DNA of 64,000 nt from Dimorphilus gyrociliatus (Eukaryota > Animalia > Annelida). How positions within the stretch are numbered: the first letter of the stretch is position 1; each line of letters starts with the position of its first letter. A model generated the notes under the pieces. It ran no database searches. It worked only from the letters and a program-made list of their open reading frames with translations, and was not told the origin of the DNA. Location: positions 352,942 through 416,941 of the forward strand of contig CAJFCJ010000009.1 of NCBI GenBank assembly GCA_904063045.1, given 5' to 3'. The translations under genes were made by a program, and so were the position numbers. Of the stretch, positions 1 through 13,459 are shown piece after piece.

Positions 1-2850
1 TTCAAGCTTTGAACCTCTGCTACCGTCAATTGAACATCGAATCGGCGTCCCAATATTTGCCTTATTTCTGTTGTCATCAAAGAGTCCAATCCCATATCTA
101 TTAGTGCAACGTCTTCGTCTATTGTCATATTATCTTCATCGATACCTAGATTTTATATAAATATAGAGTTTACAGTTGAAGAATTCAGACAATTTAAAGT
201 AAATAAATTATTACCGAGAACACTATAGATTGCCGAAATTGCTACGTGAACTCTATCTTCATTTTCGTCATTATTTGAGGAATTGCGTTGTTTAACTGGT
301 ACAATACTACTTAATATCTCCCAATTATTTAAAAGAATATTGTCCAATGTATTTAAATAAGATGCTACTCTTTGTACGCCAATTCCAGTCATGTACCACT
401 CGTTTCCCGAGAGATTGTTAACTATACAAAATTTTTCCGTCAGACATCATTACTGTTTTACTGAGGAAAACTATCATTGTAGATAACTAACTGTAGATAA
501 ATAGAACATAGCATATCTCACATTCATGTGAAAAAGTGCTCATAAAAAGAAATTATTGGCGGTAAACAGTGATATTTGCTTAATAGACCACTTTTCGCCT
601 ACATCATTTTATGATTTTATTCTTCTTAAAAGACAGCAGTACCATTTTTAATACATAACTGTATGATATTATTTTTATTCTTATTTATTTCACAAAAAAG
701 CATATTTTAATTTATCTATTGGTTTAAAATTTTTGGAAGGGATGATAAAAATTGTCCTGGAACAAATATAATACTCCTAAACACTTCAGGAACGATAAAA
801 AAAATTGTCTACAAATAAAAGCTCTTGTTGATGTTTCGTGAGGAAAGAGAAAGGATCGCCATCTGTATGTACTTCTCAAATACTGGAAGTACAATTTAAA
901 TAGTCGTTTGTTACTGTGCGAACAAACACTTCTCTAAGTATTTTAACTAGTTCTTTTCATACTTTTTCACATCCAAAATAAATCTCGTAAAATTGATGAC
1001 AAGCAGTTAACATTTCTATCGCAGATTGTTATCAACTGTTTAAAAGTATAGTACAATTAATTCATATTTCAAACAATTATGTTTTCATTAGTATATTACA
1101 TAAAGAAAAGTTTTGTAATTAAAAGCGTCAAGTATATTGTTACTTATCATAGAATTAATTTAAAATTTCATTTGGGTGTATAACTTCTTTTCTCAATAAA
1201 CATTCCAATTGTATTTTTTGCATTTTTGATATTCTTAACAATCAATTGGTGAATAAAATGTATTATACTTTTTGAAATACTCGCCTATTTGCATTCGTCA
1301 TCTTATGTTACAATGACAGTACAGGCATCGAGTTGTCTCTGTTTTCATTAGCATTATATCTCCTTAACAACCTAAAACAACTGAGTAAACACAAATTAAA
1401 ACTATACTTCTACAGCCTTTATAAATTCATATTTCATTCATAATTGTCTTATTCAAACGTATTTTATCAAAATTAAAAATATTAAATATAGAATTAAAGG
1501 TTAAGTTTATTTTCAAAAAAACAAAACTACTATCATGAAAGGATTGAATGGTATAACATTTATGATACTATATGTGTGGTTTTCTGCTGATGATGCTTTT
1601 TGATTATCCCATTCTTCTTCCGGAAATGCGGTGCTAATCCACTTACTACTCCTCTTTTTTGGTTCTTTAATGACTCTTTGAAGTTTTTCAGTAAACTGAG
1701 GTGAACAAACCATTAGTTCCGGAGAGTGGAAAGCGACACCCGAACTATCAACAATTCTAACAAAGTAGCCCTCATTCTTGAGTTGGTCAGCAAACTCCTT
1801 GACACACTCGAAAGGTCCGCTTACCGTTTGTGTTTCTTCAGAATTATTGCAAGCCGGTACAACGTTTGGTGGACACTTATTCATAGCGTCTTCCCAAGTT
1901 AAACCTACGGCTGCCATTGCTCCCGGCCGAAGGTTTGCATCCTTAATACACTTACCTCTCCAATAGGCGCATAACACAGTTTGTTCTGCAGTCAGTGTCT
2001 TATCTGCATAGGCACAACCCAACTCTCCTACCGAATGACCGATTATCCCATCAGCTTCGATCCCAAACTCTTCTAATAAATCAGTGAGCGCAATTTGTAT
2101 GGAAGTTATACAAATAAAAGTGTTGAGAGGATTTTTAAAATCATCCTCTGTGCCCTTTTCAAGTAGACGCTTCAAATCCATTCCGACGTTCATCAATGCT
2201 TTTGAACACGTTTCTATTGAATTGCGAAAGCAATCAAACGTCATCATATCTCTTCCCATGCCAACCCATTGACAACCCATTCCCGGATAGACATAATAAA
2301 TTGGTCTTTTTGTATCGGGTTCAGTGAACTTCTGTTGAATTGGATGTCATAGAGTAAAGTGTTACATTAAGATTTTGGCGGTTGGATGAATAAAATGACT
2401 TACTTGAATTCCTTTCAGAGTTGAAGGCGTATTTAACGTAATAAAACCTCTGAATGGCAAAAGATTACTGGATTCTTTCCTTTGATTGTAACATAAAAAT
2501 TGTAAACCTAAATTGTTTGTATTATTTTCAAAAAGATTCAATAGATTTTCGACCCCTTCTTTGGTTCTAGCACAAACCAAACCCACTGTAGGCCTATCTG
2601 ATAAATTGTCTATTACGCCTTCTGTTGCGTCAAAGTTGAGAATTGAATGAACGTTCGCACCGCCAAAGCCAAAAGAGTTTATGCCAACAATTCCCCCTTC
2701 CCATGGTGTTAGTCGGTCAACAACCTTAATTCTTTCACTAATCAGTGATTCAATATTTCGATTTGGCTGTTTATAATTGAGGTTCCCAGGTAGTAAACGG
2801 TGGTCGCGAGGAAGTAATAATTCTGTTTTAATTACTTCAACCAAGTGATA
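1..2850 (-). pseudogene. Deleted, decayed tandem copy of the FAS-like synthase (runs off the window start)
   Basis: 1-422 matches 4128-4549 (KR end, intron, ACP exon). 1600-2802 matches 8931-10133 (KS C-terminus, intron, AT) with only one substitution found by eye (1995 G vs 9326 A, synonymous). ~535-1470 is a frameshifted, diverged copy of ~6530-7690 (pseudo-MT), including an intron. DH, ER, most of KR and the KS N-terminus are missing. Confidence 0.85.
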
Positions 2851-3431
2851 CAAATTAAACTAATGATTAAAAAATGTAAGAATTTAATACCTGAACTACT
2901 TTTAGGCAAAAGAAAATTTTGTCGATTACGTAAGGAGAAATACTACTAATGAAATTCTTTCTGTAAGCATTTGATGCCTTTTAAATGTAACGAGGAAAGG
3001 ATTGCAAAACTCTTAAAAGTGTCAGAAACAGTGTTTGAGACAAATACAATTTCTATGCGACTAACGTTTGATAGAGATAGTGGTGACTTAGTGAAATTTG
3101 AATATGTAGGAAACTTAGATAACAAACATGGAAAAAAGAAAGATTTAAAGAGACAGAAATATGTATAATTTGTTACTGAAAATGCTACACGAGTTCTTAG
3201 TCTCTTAGTCTTCATATAGATAGCCTTCAGATAAAATTTTTTAGATATTTGATCTATCATTGACAAAAGAGCAGTTAATGAATTTGTAGGGTATCTCGTT
3301 TCACATACAAAGTCCTCTTATAACAGAGTTTTTAATTTTAATATAGGTATTTCTCTAATTGAATTCACAAATCTTTCTTCTTTCTTTTTCAAAAGAATGA
3401 TAATATCTTTTTCAACTTTATTGTACTAAAA

Positions 3432-3582
3432 CCGATCTACTCTTGCTACTGTTCACAAACAGAATTATCAAATATTTGCTATGGCAATATCTCAAGTCTT
3501 TTAGAAATGTGAACCTCGTTGACTTTTACATTTGTTTGCTATATATATATATATCTAATTTGTGTTGGAATGATGGAACTTG
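3432..3582. repeat. Diverged copy of the FAS-like gene 5' flank (pairs with 11888-12032)
   Basis: ccgatctactcttgctactgtt...aaatatttgctatg...tgacttttacatttgtttgc at 3432 vs ccgatctacgcttgctactgtt...aaatatttgctatg...tgacttcagcatttgtttgc at 11888. Confidence 0.8.
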
Positions 3583-4090
3583 TCAAAAGACACATTTATA
3601 ATATAATTAATCATTAAATGTCTATGCGATAGGAATTTTTGATAACCTATTATTTTCAGTTTCAATCAGAACGTAAGAAGTAGATCAAGCTTTTACGTCA
3701 TATCATTCACGTTTATAAAAAGATGTTGACATAGTTTATGTTGTACTTGCTAGTTGTTTTTTAAAACTATTATCGGCCTCCAGGCTCAAGTAAAAGAAAT
3801 GTTTTATTTAATAGCTACTACCTAAAAATAACACTATTTTCCATAAAACCTATAGAATTTCAATGTATTATGGCTGATTTCAGAAAGTACTAAAATGGTT
3901 TGCATAAAATTTTGAGTCACACGCAAATCATTGATGACATAAATACTATTGTTATAGTTTATTATTGTTTTCTACTCGAAGGTAAAACAAGCGTCACTTA
4001 GTCATTAGTTCATTTCTCTTATCAAAATTACCATCAAAGTTTAGTCCATTTGTTAATAATTAATAATTTTGTAATTGATTTTGTTAACTT

Positions 4091-7000
4091 TCACTTTTTT
4101 GATAAAAGTTGTGTTATTTTCTTTATATTCAAGCTTTGAACCTCTGCTACCGTCAATTGAACATCGAATCGGCGTCCCAATATTTGCCTTATTTCTGTTG
4201 TCATCAAAGAGTCCAATCCCATATCTATTAGTGCAACGTCTTCGTCTATTGTCATATTATCTTCATCGATACCTAGATTTTATATAAATATAGAGTTTAC
4301 AGTTGAAGAATTCAGACAATTTAAAGTAAATAAATTATTACCGAGAACACTATAGATTGCCGAAATTGCTACGTGAACTCTATCTTCATTTTCGTCATTA
4401 TTTGAGGAATTGCGTTGTTTAACTGGTACAATACTACTTAATATCTCCCAATTATTTAAAAGAATATTGTCCAATGTATTTAAATAAGATGCTACTCTTT
4501 GTACGCCAATTCCAGTCATGTACCACTCGTTTCCCGAGAGATTGTTAACAACTATACCAACGTCTCCCATAAAGCCCCATTGTATTCCTACAGCAGGAAA
4601 ACCATCTTTTCTCCTCTTCTCACAGATACGTTCCATGAATGAATTTGCGTATGCATAATTCGTTTGTCCTGCATTACCATATCCACTTGCTGCAGATGAA
4701 AAAACAACAAACCAATCTAGCGAATTTCGGCATTCTGCTCTTGATAGCGTGTCCAAATTTAAGGTTCCTTTAATCTTTGTCTCTGCAACTGCTTTAAACG
4801 ATTCTGCACTCTGACCACTAAAGATACCATCTCTAAGAACGGCTGCCAAATGAAAAATGCCACCAATCGGTCCAAGAGACTTTGCTTGTTGAAAGATAAC
4901 TTTCGATTCGTCTAATGAAGCAATGTTTTCCTTTAAGATAATGATATTACATCCATTTTTCTGCCAGTGTTTTACTAGCTTGGCTTGATATCCATTCTTT
5001 ATACCTGATCTTGATGTGAGTATTATACGAGTGGCTCCTCTTTGAATAAGAAATCCAGCCAGCTCTAGACCTAAACCACCCAATCCGCCAGTTATTATAT
5101 ATGATTTGTTTGGGTTACAATAAGTCTTTTTGTACCCTTGCACTAGAACACTTTCTGGTGGAAAATTTTTGTCTTTCATGCAGAGTCTTTGAAATATTGA
5201 GTATTTAGATTCAGTTCTTAGCTGACAAAAAATGAAAAAATGTAAACAAAATATCTTAAATTAATATTTATCTTTTTTAAACCTTTATTAATATTTTTCC
5301 AATATGTTTTCCTTCAGCCATGAATCTAAAGGCCTCTTCTAACTTATTCTTTGAGAATACATAAGTGGGAAGTGGTTTAACAATATTAGTCTCTAATCCT
5401 GTCTTTACAAGTTGCCAAACTTCTTGCCAAATGCTATAATCTTCGAATAGGTTCTCCAAAACTATACCGTGAAACGATATATTCTTTAGAAATGCCGACA
5501 TTCCCAGTTTATGATTCTGAGAAAGATCAAATTTTCCAATCTCCAGAAATCTACCATTTTTTGCTAAAATGTCAATTCCTGCTTGTAATTTTTCTTCACT
5601 TAATGAATTGAGCAGGATATCGACCCCTTTTCCATTTGTTTCTTGTAATATGTCATCAACAAACTGTGTAGTTCTAGAATGGGAAATTCTCTCTCTAGGT
5701 ATCTTGAAATTATCCATTAAAAACTGAAGTTTTTCTTCCGTACCAACAGTTGTATATATTATAGAATTGAACGATTTAGCAATTTGAATAGCGGCTTGAC
5801 CAACAGCACTGCATTATATAATATAAATTAGTTGAAAATGATTGAATTTAAAAGAAAACCTCGTCGCCGATTGAATCAGGATTTTTTCGCCAAACTTAAT
5901 TCTTGCTCTAACAACTAGTGCGTAATATGCAGTAGCATAAGCAACTGGAATTGTTGCTGCATCCTTTAAATTCCAATTATCGGGTACTTGCCATGAATAT
6001 CGCTTATCAATCTGAATGTTCGTTGCTAAACCTCCAAAATCAATAAGACCAATTACCCTTTTACCCGATTCATCAATTCCAGAATATTCAATACCGAGAA
6101 ATTGGTCATCATCTTGTTGCGCACCTGGAATTGCGTCTAAACTTAGGCGACCGGTCGCTAACATAACGTCTCGGAAATTTAGTGAAGCGTAGTGAGTATA
6201 AACCATCTTTTTTTCAGGACATTGATGAGGTCGTGGTTTAGATTGAACCCATTGTAAAGTTGATAAATCCCCCCGAAGAAATGCAGTTGCATAGGCATTT
6301 TCAAGATCAGTACAAGAAGTGACTGTATAATGAAAAAAGAGAATTGTATATAAAGGAATTGAACTTGAATGTCTGACGAACCATCTTCAATGTGAAAGTG
6401 ACAAAAACAACCCAAAGTTCCATTACGAAAGATATTAAAGACCAAATCTTTCGCTAATAATTCAGTAAACTTATCACCACCAGGTAGGTAACACTCAGGA
6501 ATTAATTCGTCTTCAAGGTTTGCGTTGAATAAGCACCTATAATAAGAAAACGTTGTCGGTAAACATTGATATTTGCTTAATAGATCACTTTTCAACTACC
6601 TCACTTTATCACCATCTGGTTCCTGTCTAAGGCTATTCAAAAAACCCACAATACCATTTCTATTATCTTTATCGGCTATTAACCATACTCTAGTATTCTT
6701 ATCTTTATTTGTTTCCTCCATAGCGGATTTTAACTTGTCCACCCACTCAAATTGTTCATAATCATTGCATGGTATGATAATTGGTCTTGGTACATAGGGA
6801 AGTTTTTTTTTACAAACCATAAATGAAGAAAAGATATTATCATATCTTTCGATAATTATTTTCCATCCGGCAGATTCCAATTTACTTATTATTTCACTAT
6901 AGTTTAAGCTTTTAAACGATTTACCATTAGTTGGTATTGATAAGATACTTTTTAAATTATTTAAAATGGAATGTTTGGTTGTTGTTTCGTGAAGGAAAAG

Positions 7001-10000
7001 AAATCCGTCGTCTTTAAGTACTTCCCAAATAGCTTTCAAGTCATAATTGCAAGTTAAATAGTCCTTTACTAGAACAATATCTAAACTCTTAGGATCTTTT
7101 GACCATCCGACTTGCGCAAAACTATTTTTAGAAGTTTCATCGGCTTTTTCGCATCCAGAATAAATCTCCTCAAATTGATGAGTAGCATACTGCTTCAGAG
7201 TGTTCTTAATCCTTTGAATAAATGTCCAGTTAAACGGTGATTCAGTAATATAATATAATAATCTTAATCTGTTAGTAGGCTTGTTAAGAAATATTACGTC
7301 CAAAGCCGCTTTAAATTGTCTTTCTCCCATAAGATTGTTTATTAGTTTGTCATCTGATAAGCTTTTAATTAAAGTATCTCTTGAGGGTATAGCTTTTTTA
7401 TCAATAAACAATCGAATTGTTTGTTTCAAAGTTTCAATATTCTCTTCTTTAGAAATCGATTGTCGGCGATAATGTATATTTATTGTCGACATTTTCCTCT
7501 TTGATTTACTCTCTTGTTTGTATTCATAATCTTGTGTCACGTTCCTGCCATTATCTCTATTTGCATTAGTACTATATCCTTCTAACATACTAATACAACT
7601 ATTTAAATAAAATAGAAGTTGAGAATGTACTTCAACAGTCTTCTTAAATTCAACAAATTCATATTTCTGTAATACATTTTGCTGGTTATCGAACTTTCTT
7701 GGAGAGACATTTAGCTGCAAACCAATTAATCGTACTCCTCCGGCAATGCAGGTGTTTGTTAATGGATCAAAAGTAAAGTTGATTTCTATTATTGAAAATA
7801 TTTAAAAATATCAATAAAAAAGAGACTATTTGATAATATTTTATATCTTACCTTCATTATTGATGAAAGCTAAATTATCAGTGTTTATAACCAGTCGTCG
7901 TATTCTTGTTGGTAGTTTTAGTGAGCGATTAACAGAGCTTAAAGCATGTACTTGTAACATTGAATCGAGAAATGTTATCCAACTATTTTGCCATAATATC
8001 TTTCCCGTATATCCGTTTAAGGTTGATGATGTAACTAATTGAAAATTTGGACCGTAGTCGTAACCTCTCACACGTAATTCTTTATAAATATCTTCTTTAG
8101 TTAGTTGAAATTTCTCGTCATCATCTGATAATTGTAAATTATTTCCTTCTCTACGAAAACTTGCTTTTGGTGCATGATATTTATCTATTTGTCCATTTAC
8201 AACTAAACTTTCACTTTCATTTATCTCAAACACTCCACTACTGGCAGATATTCGAACGTGAAATTCTAAATCGCCTTCCTCTGGTATTAAAACAGCGTGA
8301 TGAAGGTGAAAGTCCCTAATAACGATAGACAACGACTCCTTGTCCACTCCGATCAAACCTGCATATCTTTTCCACAAAATGTCAACATAACCAGTTGCTG
8401 GAAATAGGAGTCGACCGTCTATTTTATGATCTTTTAAGGGTTCCAATTCTTCGGCACTTAAAATTACAATTTCACCGCTATTCTTAACTGAATTTCCTCC
8501 TCTTAAATCAGTTTTAAGAAGAGGCCACTCAATTTCATGATTCCATTGGATACATGGAGATATTAATGGTGTTCCTTGACCAATAGGAAGTCTTACCTTT
8601 GGCTGTAATTTCATTGTATCAACGTTCTTTCCAATGTTATGTAATCTAATAAACATCGAAGGATAATTAATGTAAGATATTCCTCTGAAATGAAACTTAC
8701 AATCCTAGATTTTTCATAAAAAATCCCAAGTTATCTTTATCGTTCTTCTTCATTAAGCTAGTAAGATAAGCACTTGGTCCTAAGGCTCTCTTAATAACTG
8801 ATTGCAGTAGACCATGTGGACCAATTTCAATAATTATAGAATCATTCGGTATCATTTTCAAGGCAGCATTAAATAAAACAGGATGTGTGAAATTATGTGT
8901 ATGATATTCTGCTGACGAATAGCATGCCTCTTGATTATCCCATTCTTCTTCCGGAAATGCGGTGCTAATCCACTTACTACTCCTCTTTTTTGGTTCTTTA
9001 ATGACTCTTTGAAGTTTTTCAGTAAACTGAGGTGAACAAACCATTAGTTCCGGAGAGTGGAAAGCGACACCCGAACTATCAACAATTCTAACAAAGTAGC
9101 CCTCATTCTTGAGTTGGTCAGCAAACTCCTTGACACACTCGAAAGGTCCGCTTACCGTTTGTGTTTCTTCAGAATTATTGCAAGCCGGTACAACGTTTGG
9201 TGGACACTTATTCATAGCGTCTTCCCAAGTTAAACCTACGGCTGCCATTGCTCCCGGCCGAAGGTTTGCATCCTTAATACACTTACCTCTCCAATAGGCG
9301 CATAACACAGTTTGTTCTGCAGTCAATGTCTTATCTGCATAGGCACAACCCAACTCTCCTACCGAATGACCGATTATCCCATCAGCTTCGATCCCAAACT
9401 CTTCTAATAAATCAGTGAGCGCAATTTGTATGGAAGTTATACAAATAAAAGTGTTGAGAGGATTTTTAAAATCATCCTCTGTGCCCTTTTCAAGTAGACG
9501 CTTCAAATCCATTCCGACGTTCATCAATGCTTTTGAACACGTTTCTATTGAATTGCGAAAGCAATCAAACGTCATCATATCTCTTCCCATGCCAACCCAT
9601 TGACAACCCATTCCCGGATAGACATAATAAATTGGTCTTTTTGTATCGGGTTCAGTGAACTTCTGTTGAATTGGATGTCATAGAGTAAAGTGTTACATTA
9701 AGATTTTGGCGGTTGGATGAATAAAATGACTTACTTGAATTCCTTTCAGAGTTGAAGGCGTATTTAACGTAATAAAACCTCTGAATGGCAAAAGATTACT
9801 GGATTCTTTCCTTTGATTGTAACATAAAAATTGTAAACCTAAATTGTTTGTATTATTTTCAAAAAGATTCAATAGATTTTCGACCCCTTCTTTGGTTCTA
9901 GCACAAACCAAACCCACTGTAGGCCTATCTGATAAATTGTCTATTACGCCTTCTGTTGCGTCAAAGTTGAGAATTGAATGAACGTTCGCACCGCCAAAGC

Positions 10001-11357
10001 CAAAAGAGTTTATGCCAACAATTCCCCCTTCCCATGGTGTTAGTCGGTCAACAACCTTAATTCTTTCACTAATCAGTGATTCAATATTTCGATTTGGCTG
10101 TTTATAATTGAGGTTCCCAGGTAGTAAACGGTGTTCATGCGCTAATATTAGTTTAACTAAACTCGCTAGTCCAGCCGCTGGCTCACAGTGTCCCATATTA
10201 CTTTTGACAGATCCAACCAATAAAGGACTTTCCCTTTTATCACAGAATACTTTATCCAAAGCCTTTAACTCTTGGGGATCGCCAGCTTGTGTACCTGTTC
10301 CATGTGCTTCAATATAAGAAACTTTCAACGGGTCGATGTTAGCTTGACGGTAGACATCTCTTAATAAATTTGATTGAACATTTCCAGAGGGAAAAGTAAT
10401 TCCTAAGATATTGTTATTTAGTAGTTAATTGTTTCTTTAATTTGTTTATCTTTCTAACCTAATTCTTTTTGACCGTCGCAGTTATCAAGAGAACCAAGAA
10501 CAGAAGAATAGATACGTCGTGCATCTTTATAATTCTGTAGGAAAAGCGCAATGATCCCTTCACTTCTTACGTAACCATTTGCTACAATTGTTTTAAAGGT
10601 TGTATTTATTATATAAAATAAAATCTAAACATAAATAGAAACCTGAATCGTCGAATGATTTACATCTACCGTCTGGCGAAAGCATGTGAAGTTTGTTAAA
10701 TTGAACACTACTTTCGGGTCTTAAAAGAAGATGCGATCCAGCTACAATTGCATTTTCGCAAGATCCATCAAGTAGAGCATGGTATGCCAGATTAAGTGCT
10801 TCTAAACTCGAACTGCAAGCTGTGTCCACAGCTAAACTTGGACCTTGGAAGTTAAAAGAATAGGAAATTCTATTTGCCATCATTGTTCTTGCATTTCCAG
10901 TCATTTCATATCCATTTATGCTGGTAGCATCAGTTGTTATGTTGTGGTGATTGTCTGAATGTATACATCCAACATATACTGCTGTTTTTGTTCCACTCAT
11001 TTCATTTATTGTAAAACCAGAGTCCATGATAGCTTCGTACACTACTTCTAAAAGCAGTCTTAATTGAGGATCCATAGCGGTTGCTTGTTTTGCATGTATA
11101 TTGAAAAATGAAGCATCAAAATGAGTTATATCTTTTAGTTTTCCATTGCTTAGTGGCAAATCATAAATACCTTTTGTTAGGAAAATAGAAAATAGAAGCA
11201 TTACATTCAAGTCAATATATTAAAATTTACCAAGAGGCCATCTTCTCTCGTCCTCAGTTACCATATCAACGCCATCCTGAAGATTTCTCCAAAATTCATT
11301 AACATTTGAACTTTCTGGTAACCGTCCTGAAAAACCAGTTATGGCTATTCTTTTCAT
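4091..11357 (-). CDS. Type I fatty-acid-synthase-like megasynthase / animal FAS-like PKS: KS-AT-DH-pseudoMT-ER-KR-ACP, no thioesterase (~2197 aa, 12 exons)
   Basis: Exons (GT-AG, frame-consistent, 6594 nt in total): 11357-11231, 11170-10643, 10581-10459, 10402-9735, 9662-8701, 8645-7852, 7785-6600, 6536-6382, 6322-5860, 5808-5283, 5221-4342, 4272-4091. Motifs: KS DTACSSS, HGTGT, KSNMGH; AT GHSVG, VAFH; [18 protein letters not shown]; [18 protein letters not shown]; ACP MGLDSL followed by TGA at 4093-4091. Confidence 0.95.
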
Positions 11358-11887
11358 TTCTGTTGAATAAGTGATATTGAAAATGTGGAAAAATATATTT
11401 TGTACACTCAAATTACCAGATATATCCAGCAAAGCACGTATACGTAAAGCCTTGTTTAGAAAACGGGAAGATCTAAGAGACTGAGCAATTATCAGGAATT
11501 TTCAAGGTTTTTTTATTTTTACTAGAAAGTAAATAGGCAATGGATTTTAAATTTAATGATTCAACAGCAAATCTTAATTAGATGTATATATATTTTATTA
11601 AAAGATTAAAAGTTTGCCTCTTCTGAGAAAGTTTTCGACCGTTGTAAACGTTACGATGTCGCTCCTGAAAGTAAGTTTTTTTACACTATTTCAAATATAG
11701 TTAACAAAAGATCAACTCTTTGACTACATAGGATATATTTGCATACACCTAAACAATCTGCTTGAAATAAACTTTGAAAAAATTCCTTACTCTAATTATA
11801 ATCCTTAAAATATTCTAATTTTGTCTTTAAAGTAGAACTAGAAGAAAACAAGTACAGAATAATATCTTTCTTAAGTTTCTAGTATAC

Positions 11888-12032
11888 CCGATCTACGCTT
11901 GCTACTGTTAACTAGGACAATTACCAAATATTTGCTATGACAATAATCCAAGCTTTTCAGAAATATAAACTTCATTGACTTCAGCATTTGTTTGCCGAAA
12001 ATATCTAATTAGTGTTGATACGAGAGAACTTG
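11888..12032. repeat. FAS-like gene 5' flank segment duplicated at 3432-3582
   Basis: Direct diverged repeat with an offset of about 8456 nt. Confidence 0.8.
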
Positions 12033-13459
12033 CTATAGTATACATGGATAATATAACCTATTCTTTGTATATAAACTCCTTTTGATAAAGTAATGTATGT
12101 ACATATAACAGGCATATATTGAATACACATCGCATATAAATACGTATCATTCATTCATTAATTTAACAAATTCAAATATGTACTTCATGATAAAATATTC
12201 ATAAATATGATAAATAAAATGAAATAAACATAAAATTGAATCTGCTCTTTTTATTTACTTAATACATACTCAATCACATTGCTATTTAGTTCTATTGTAT
12301 GATTTTGAAATGTCTGCCTTCAACGTTATTGTTTGAATTTGATCAAAAACTGTATATACTGTATGAATTTAAAAGCAACAATTTTCTTTTAAAAATTACC
12401 CTTCCCTAAATCTTTTCTGTATAGGAATTTTTCTTGTCTAGTTAGTTGCATTTTTCACACATTTCTCTGTATTTAATAGGAATATAAGTGGCCTTAGTCA
12501 ACTCTTTCAAAGTAAACTGAATATGCTTTTTAACAAATAAATACTATGTCTTTAATTATACAATAATATTTGAAAGTATTTTTGTTTATGTAATTGACCG
12601 GCAAATACTGAATTTACAATATTATTTCTAAGAAATATTTATCAGTTCATTTTATAGGTCATCATATTTGAACTCTTTATAAATATATATTTTAAAAACC
12701 GCCTAGTTTGATACCAAAAAAGTGAAAACTTCGTAGCTACGTAATCTTTAATATTTTCTTTTTTCTTCAAGGAAACCCCTATCGTTCTTAGAACTTTACA
12801 TAACTTTACGTTATTGGTAATTAAATCTATTGAATTTTTAAATTGTTATTAATATACAGCATATCAAATGTAGAACAAATATTGAACTACATATTTGTAT
12901 ACAGTCTATCTCTTTAAGTCTATCAATATGAACCACGTGCATTTCTACGAATATGTCAAGAAAAGAAATACGCTGAAAGAATTAGCTGCTTGTATTAACG
13001 AACTGTTGTGAAGACTATTCTTCTTCTGAGTGTTTGCTTATACTACTTTAATATCTAAAAGTTTCTTTCTCTCTTCAAGCAGGAGATTATGAGATCTCAC
13101 ACCTTTTTCTATTCTAATGCTTAGAAAAAAAGTTCAACCACAGTCTAGTATTCTATACAATTATTACATAATACAATTTCATTCAAATTTGCCTCGGTAT
13201 AAAATATAAAATATATACTCTGATTATTCGATAAGAAATATAAAAGAGTTTTAATTAGGATATATACAGAATCATAGCAAATCAGTCATTTCGTATTTAA
13301 TGTTCTACTTAATGCCCTCCCAACAAACAAAGAAAGTTGGGTAAAAAACGAAAATATCAGCACTTGGACAAACAAAATTGTATCCTAAATATAAAACCCT
13401 TCTTCCCTATTTTCATATCATCTTCTTTATACTATGTTTAAAGTGCAATAGAAATACAG

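Follow-up and report, generated by a model that had tools for sequence, protein, structure and literature searches.

Gene structure and domain organization

The window analysed here is a 64,000-nucleotide (nt) stretch of DNA from the annelid Dimorphilus gyrociliatus (assembly GCA_904063045.1, contig CAJFCJ010000009.1, positions 352,942 to 416,941), and all coordinates are positions within it unless another locus is named. On its minus strand, from 11357 to 4091, lies a gene resembling animal fatty acid synthase (FAS) that encodes a complete multidomain enzyme as far as the acyl carrier protein (ACP) and ends there, without a thioesterase (TE) in cis. We call it the FAS-like gene, or copy 1 where it must be told apart from a partial tandem duplicate, copy 2.

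The gene has 12 exons and encodes 2197 amino acids, beginning with an ATG at 11357 and ending with a TGA at 4093-4091. Exons 1 to 6 lie at 11357-11231, 11170-10643, 10581-10459, 10402-9735, 9662-8701 and 8645-7852, and exons 7 to 12 at 7785-6600, 6536-6382, 6322-5860, 5808-5283, 5221-4342 and 4272-4091. The coding sequence of 6594 nt (2197 codons) is uninterrupted, and each of the eleven introns, all of the GT-AG type, is 51-72 nt long. Our model matches at every residue a public 2197-residue D. gyrociliatus protein from the same 2.69-Mb contig (P0406). A second public entry for the gene, DgyrCDS7222 (P0179, CAD5118531.1; 2157 residues), reads through the intron at 4273-4341, with the result that the ACP is absent. 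The model aligns colinearly to residues 1-2196 of bird FASN, with 41% identity, after which the bird protein goes on with its thioesterase as far as residue 2513.

Pfam searches of the minus-strand exons gave a single polypeptide with the domain order ketosynthase (KS), malonyl/acetyl transferase (MAT, or AT), dehydratase (DH), pseudo-methyltransferase and pseudo-ketoreductase (psiME/psiKR), enoylreductase (ER), ketoreductase (KR) and ACP. Matches were to the N-terminal, C-terminal and C-terminal extension families of KS, Acyl_transf_1, PKS_DH_N, FAS_pseudo-KR, ADH_zinc_N, KR and PP-binding. Together with the alignment, they place the catalytic residues as follows, all on the minus strand: Cys161 (10817-10815), His293 and His331 in the KS (9966-11357); Ser582 (in GHSVGE), Arg607 and His684 in the MAT (8639-9656; Acyl_transf_1, E = 1e-63); His876 and Asp1030 in the DH (7718-8521); the GGLGGLG loop, Lys1995, Ser2019 and Tyr2033 in the KR (4454-5182; Pfam KR, E = 3e-50); and the phosphopantetheine serine Ser2159 (in GLDSL, 4210-4208) in the ACP exon (4094-4272). 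The structural psiME/psiKR region (6321-7717), recognized by FAS_pseudo-KR, contains no S-adenosylmethionine-binding GxGxG motif that we could see in its translation. It is followed by the ER (5219-6320; ADH_zinc_N), considered separately below. No named catalytic residue of the KS, MAT, DH, KR or ACP is missing, which bears out an earlier note on this DNA that had called these motifs intact from the sequence alone. When the protein is compared with 23 canonical FAS ranging from Trichoplax to primates, it retains 82 of 86 invariant sites in the KS, 27 of 27 in the MAT, 22 of 25 in the DH, 71 of 82 in the ER, 52 of 57 in the KR and 7 of 9 in the ACP.

Absence of a thioesterase at the 3' end

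The protein ends in ...TQLLSKK, and its TGA stop (4091-4093) lies 38 residues past the ACP serine, right after ACP helix 4. A candidate polyadenylation signal, AATAAA, occupies 3958-3963 on the same strand. The earlier note had reported both the last exon, ending ...TQLLSKK-TGA after the ACP, and the AATAAA at 3963-3958; the gene coordinates it gave are exact, and its statement that no thioesterase exon lies downstream in the window also holds. With five FAS thioesterase tails as queries, tblastn returned only noise over the 64-kb window (best E = 0.076) and nothing real in locus L002, which consists of the gene with 10 kb on each side, runs 5.9 kb beyond the window start, and over its first 21357 bases is identical, in reverse complement, to window 1-21357. 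Downstream in L002, the next gene called is a Myb/ZZ gene in convergent orientation. Lingula FAS has an intron at the same place, just ahead of its ACP exon, but there the exon continues unbroken through the linker to the TE; the worm gene therefore ends within what is elsewhere one exon.

Transcripts were examined as Logan contigs of run X2, a 2017 transcriptome. A 6903-nt contig at a depth of 110 is the spliced mRNA of the FAS-like gene and supports the introns at 5222-5282, 5809-5859 and 9663-9734, the last of these being seen at its copy-2 twin, 2332-2403. Across 1228 nt of copy-1 exons, X2 contigs show zero differences from the genome. An 875-nt contig (depth 391) has the intron at 4273-4341 spliced out and continues colinearly through the stop and the AATAAA to 3928, with no splice at AA/GTGAAA. 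Two differences, at 4112 and 3970, and a further 322 nt that match copy 2 exactly assign this contig to copy 2, so we do not take it as direct evidence for the 3' end of copy 1. Over the 3' coding part copy 2 equals copy 1, the difference at 4112 being synonymous. A third difference between the copies lies at 3927. In copy-1-specific DNA below 3928 there is no X2 contig, which fits polyadenylation after the AATAAA, though contigs cannot prove absence.

Splicing from AA/GTGAAA into TE exons, a case against its own reading that the earlier note had set out in advance, is very unlikely: the RNA contig runs colinearly through the stop (it comes from copy 2, which is identical there), there is no TE within 10 kb downstream, and the orthologue described below has its stop, a TAG, two codons earlier. 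That earlier TAG, together with the Lingula ACP exon entering the TE without an intron, also led us to reject the idea that the stop is a former ACP/TE intron donor. The FAS-like gene has no cis thioesterase.

An orthologous locus under purifying selection

The orthologous locus of a related species is contained in a 43.8-kb contig (L003) from an independent Logan assembly of run SRR23372228. It is syntenic, with a UCH-type gene region upstream and the Myb/ZZ gene downstream, and holds the FAS-like gene in single copy. The two genes share 72-73% of nucleotides and, per exon, 63-88% of amino acids. The orthologue ends ...KQLLS-TAG, two codons ahead of the D. gyrociliatus stop, and no thioesterase was found in the 9 kb after it. 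Because both genes end in the same way at the ACP, loss of the TE predates the split of the two dinophilid species. By the Nei-Gojobori method over 2103 codons, pN is 0.146 and pS 0.736 (saturated), and all exons, including those of the ER and ACP, are constrained. The gene is under strong purifying selection, and the orthologue and the pN/pS comparison together indicate that it is neither an assembly artefact nor a pseudogene. Cluster look-ups of the orthologue's open reading frames (ORFs) yielded no further species. An extra intron in the orthologue (L003:9926-10001), within the counterpart of D. gyrociliatus exon 10, fits intron loss in the compacted D. gyrociliatus genome.

A remodelled enoylreductase

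The NADPH-binding loop of the ER (5799-5873, interrupted by the intron at 5809-5859) reads QSATSAVG in the FAS-like gene and QSASSAVG in its orthologue, compared with HSGSGGVG in the 23 canonical FAS, so that the middle glycine of GxGxxG is replaced by serine. In a set of about 270 ER loops from the retrieved proteins, the His-to-Gln change and the Gly-to-Ser change at the fifth position are each unique to the FAS-like gene. The position of Asp1797, reportedly one of two ER proton donors proposed by Maier et al. 2008, is Glu in the worm protein (E1787) and Asp in 25 of 26 other sequences. Measured against the signature of a canonical active ER, H-S/A-G-x-G-G-V-G with K1771 and D1797, the protein thus retains the lysine (K1761), but both the loop and the aspartate are changed.

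The D1797E replacement, like the loop changes, is also present in the orthologue, and these shared differences indicate that the remodelling is old and conserved rather than random decay. Whether it leaves the ER impaired or otherwise altered in activity we judge from the sequence to be close to an even bet. Five TE-bearing FAS (P0217, P0317, P0334, P0372 and P0403; three named bee sequences, from Hylaeus, Osmia and Megachile) have HSGSGAVG or HAGSGAVG, and the loop thus has no strict need of the second glycine in its GG pair.

A second, more canonical FAS transcript

Some X2 contigs derive from a second FAS. They match the window within 5581-5805 only, and their loose ends encode SVLIHSGSGG upstream and ASVRLLASHGR downstream, both of which are canonical FAS ER motifs. 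The sequence of the upstream motif (SVLIHSGSGG) is absent from the window. The animals sampled in X2 therefore also transcribe a FAS of more canonical type. A protein search restricted to the ER region (P0179:1666-1750) gave no second Dimorphilus FAS protein, and the flanking peptides match none of the retrieved proteins. The stretch 5581-5805, common to copy 1 and the second-FAS contigs with no listed difference, is either a gene-conversion patch between the paralogues or a chimera of the assembly graph.

Relationship to animal FAS

The best 120 database relatives of the FAS-like protein are all canonical FAS and score 1786-1903 bits at 41-47% identity. PF00975 is present in nearly every one, and Lingula, Lineus, Mytilus and Lymnaea rank near the top; none of these 120 is another annelid protein or an animal FAS-like polyketide synthase (AFPK). 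Identity to canonical FAS is 41-43%, compared with 47-57% within canonical FAS. The trees contain no AFPK reference sequence, and the comparison with AFPKs is one of bit scores against PDB entries.

The position of the gene depends on the model. In a KS-AT tree it falls among long ecdysozoan branches, its own branch being about four times the median FAS terminal branch. In a full-length LG+G4 tree it branches apart from every animal FAS (an AU test against a lophotrochozoan grouping gives p 0.037), and a full-length LG+C20 tree makes it sister to lophotrochozoan FAS (SH-aLRT 75, stem 1.75). Across the full-length trees its stem is 0.89-1.75 changes per site. We discount the position outside animal FAS as long-branch attraction, as the C20 model shifts the gene to lophotrochozoan FAS and the outgroup roots among fast ecdysozoans. 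The trees thus weakly suggest a strongly accelerated offshoot of lophotrochozoan FAS, with a placement that varies with the model and a weak grouping.

The partial tandem copy and neighbouring genes

Copy 2, which the earlier note does not mention, lies on the minus strand at 1-3606 and runs past the window start (L002:17752-21560). It is a colinear, internally deleted duplicate of the FAS-like gene, in which blastn delimits four blocks: 3400-3606, corresponding to the copy-1 upstream region 11859-12056 (73-77% identity, the blastn settings differing); 1563-2805, corresponding to 8888-10136, the C-terminal half of the KS with the AT (98.6-99.75%); 529-1429, remnants of 6526-7652 in the psiME (63-86%); and 1-422, corresponding to 4128-4549 (100%). 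The last block extends past the window with the KR tail, the ACP exon, the stop and the 3' untranslated region (UTR), at 99.5-100% identity to copy 1. The N-terminus of the KS with its active cysteine, the DH, the ER and most of the KR are absent. Such a mixture of long-diverged and almost unchanged blocks suggests that copy 2 is an old duplicate that has undergone gene conversion. X2 contigs show it to be transcribed, at low depth over its unique DNA, and the gene calls for L002 do not include it. The last two exons remain intact, and translation from an ATG at 392 across the conserved splice would yield some 121 residues (KR tail, linker and ACP), possibly a free-standing ACP.

The genes around copy 1 include USP, exostosin, an L4-type ribosomal protein, a Y-family polymerase, an M28 peptidase and an ankyrin protein; a scan of these neighbours gave no tailoring or release enzyme, and we dismissed the idea of a biosynthetic cluster. 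In a 2024 coral metatranscriptome (X1), two short unspliced contigs match window 234-437 and 4113-4300 at 98.5-99.5% identity, and that sample probably contained a Dimorphilus-like worm.

Proposed function and alternative explanations

The explanation we favour, at somewhat better than even odds, is that the FAS-like gene encodes a type I iterative megasynthase that is functional and kept by selection, arose from an animal FAS, lost its TE before the two dinophilid species split, and is likely to serve as a specialised AFPK-like paralogue beside a more canonical FAS. In such an enzyme the MAT would load acetyl and malonyl (possibly methylmalonyl) units onto Ser2159 of the ACP, the KS would condense them iteratively at Cys161, and the KR and DH would process the chain in every round. 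With an altered or impaired ER, some double bonds may remain in the chain. Without a cis TE, the chain would have to be freed by a discrete hydrolase or acyltransferase or else lactonise spontaneously, as has been proposed for EcPKS1 and EcPKS2 of Elysia chlorotica. Because the thioesterase is absent and a reducing domain is altered, the product is probably something other than ordinary palmitate.

Several observations weigh against this interpretation: (i) The ER retains 71 of 82 invariant sites and is under as much constraint as the KS and AT. (ii) The changes of the first and the sixth-position glycine of the ER loop to alanine are also found in active enzymes, among TE-bearing FAS or polyketide synthases (PKSs). 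On both counts the ER may still work. (iii) The 3' end of copy 1 itself rests on sequence identity, the public annotation and the orthologue, as the RNA contig that covers this end carries copy-2 alleles. (iv) The KS, ER and KR are far nearer to FASN than to EcPKS1/2, and the MAT keeps every invariant site, which makes a fatty-acid product quite possible. The earlier note had called the gene a candidate polyketide synthase, and what stands of this is an intact, expressed, TE-less enzyme, whereas the greater closeness of KS, ER and KR to FASN counts the other way; a new PKS is plausible, but unproven. Its companion claim that this is not the housekeeping FAS fits the presence of a second FAS transcript with canonical ER motifs; the gene also departs from canonical FASN in its long branch, its 41-43% identity and its altered ER loop with D1797E.

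Less probable, although a serious contender, is that the gene is the primary-metabolism FAS of dinophilids, which would make saturated fatty acyl-ACP and leave release to a discrete thioesterase or acyltransferase encoded elsewhere. The condensing and reducing catalytic residues are all intact, as are the 27 invariant MAT sites; FASN is the closest solved structure for KS, ER and KR, and canonical FAS are the best database relatives; the C20 tree groups the gene with lophotrochozoan FAS; and strong purifying selection and a transcript contig at good depth are what such a role would lead one to expect. A housekeeping enzyme accords poorly, however, with an ER loop altered at residues invariant from Placozoa to primates, with Glu in place of D1797, with the very long stem, and with a second FAS transcript whose ER motifs are canonical.

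We regard it as unlikely, though worth stating, that dinophilids have no cis-TE FAS at all, both paralogues ending at the ACP with bulk release in trans and the copy with the remodelled ER giving an unsaturated or polyketide-like product. If true, the published rule that every animal FAS has a TE would have an exception, and a whole genome lacking a cis-TE FAS would show that an animal can make its bulk lipids with release in trans.

That the missing TE is an artefact of assembly or annotation, its exons lying elsewhere or having been dropped in the near-identical tandem repeat, is very improbable. Blocks of 100% and 99.75% identity are typical sites of assembly failure, and the public model P0179 is indeed mis-annotated at the 3' end, but in the independent assembly of the related species the gene likewise stops after the ACP and is followed by the Myb gene, one RNA contig follows the genome without a break across the stop and 3' UTR and a second spans the repeat boundary at 422, and an in-frame stop follows the ACP with no TE in the next 10 kb, unlike the Lingula exon that continues into its TE. 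This explanation is already largely refuted. A decaying duplicate or incipient pseudogene without a function of its own, which the lost TE, altered ER loop, accelerated evolution and plainly degraded copy 2 alongside might suggest, is the least credible of all, being refuted by the selection test, with every exon constrained, provided that the two genes compared are true orthologues, and at odds with a 2197-codon ORF uninterrupted over 12 exons, a full set of catalytic residues and a spliced transcript at a depth of 110.

What the locus adds is an annelid lineage with a TE-less form, of apparently independent origin from FAS stock, that has been kept by strong selection in two species together with a conserved and unusual ER cofactor loop. 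A compact gene of 7.3 kb in a culturable worm with a tiny genome offers a good system for studying product release and the function of the remodelled ER.

Comparison with known systems

Only recently have TE-less FAS-like synthases been recognised as enzymes with which animals make polyketides; the descriptions come from molluscs and arthropods. In the survey of Lin et al. 2024 (PMC10764717), all animal FAS have a TE, mollusc AFPK clades 1-3 lack one and arthropod AFPKs mostly retain it; annelids enter solely as a source of FAS training sequences. For annelids, Dimorphilus included, our literature search found no description of a FAS that lacks the TE.

Canonical FASN of human and pig (PDB 2VZ8, 8VF7) has the same domain order as the worm protein up to the ACP and the same KS, MAT, DH, KR and ACP residues, and is the top PDB match for the worm KS, ER and KR. 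The intron before the ACP exon is likewise common to the worm gene and the Lingula FAS gene. The worm protein differs from canonical FASN in having no C-terminal thioesterase (PF00975, GxSxG), and in its QSATSAVG loop and Glu at D1797.

TE-less FAS-like proteins are already known in animals, both as the mollusc AFPK clades and as annotated proteins of Lingula, Mytilus, a tick and a firefly. Lingula FAS2 (XP_013396069), a Mytilus FAS-like protein (XP_076103743), a Dermacentor FAS-like protein and the Pyrocoelia tandem unit resemble the worm protein in ending 34-47 residues past the ACP serine. The first three differ from it in their canonical ER loops and short branches, and the TE-less Lingula, Mytilus and Dermacentor proteins (P0319, P0280/P0284 and P0322) are each sister to the FAS of their own species, so TE loss appears to be recurrent in animals. 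Some of these annotated paralogues may be truncated gene models. The TE-less firefly protein (P0001) is also without an AT.

With EcPKS1 and EcPKS2 (PDB 9CQ1, 9CTK) and the mollusc AFPK clades 1-3, the worm protein shares a FAS-like set of domains, a C-terminal ACP and the lack of a TE. EcPKS1/2, in which the ER is non-functional and the ACP lies at the C-terminus, make polyene pyrones (PMC11831141). An inactive methyltransferase is a further likeness, and the worm ER is possibly non-functional as well. The worm AT exon scores 345.8 bits against EcPKS1 and 341.6 against FASN. The other domains differ in this respect, scoring against the PDB entries of EcPKS1/2 and FASN, respectively, 116-129 versus 193-201 bits for the KS, 64-81 versus 183-187 for the ER and 161-186 versus 262 for the KR. 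By similarity, then, the FAS-like gene is placed outside the sacoglossan AFPK clade, and it differs from the AFPKs described, which come from molluscs and arthropods, in being an annelid gene.

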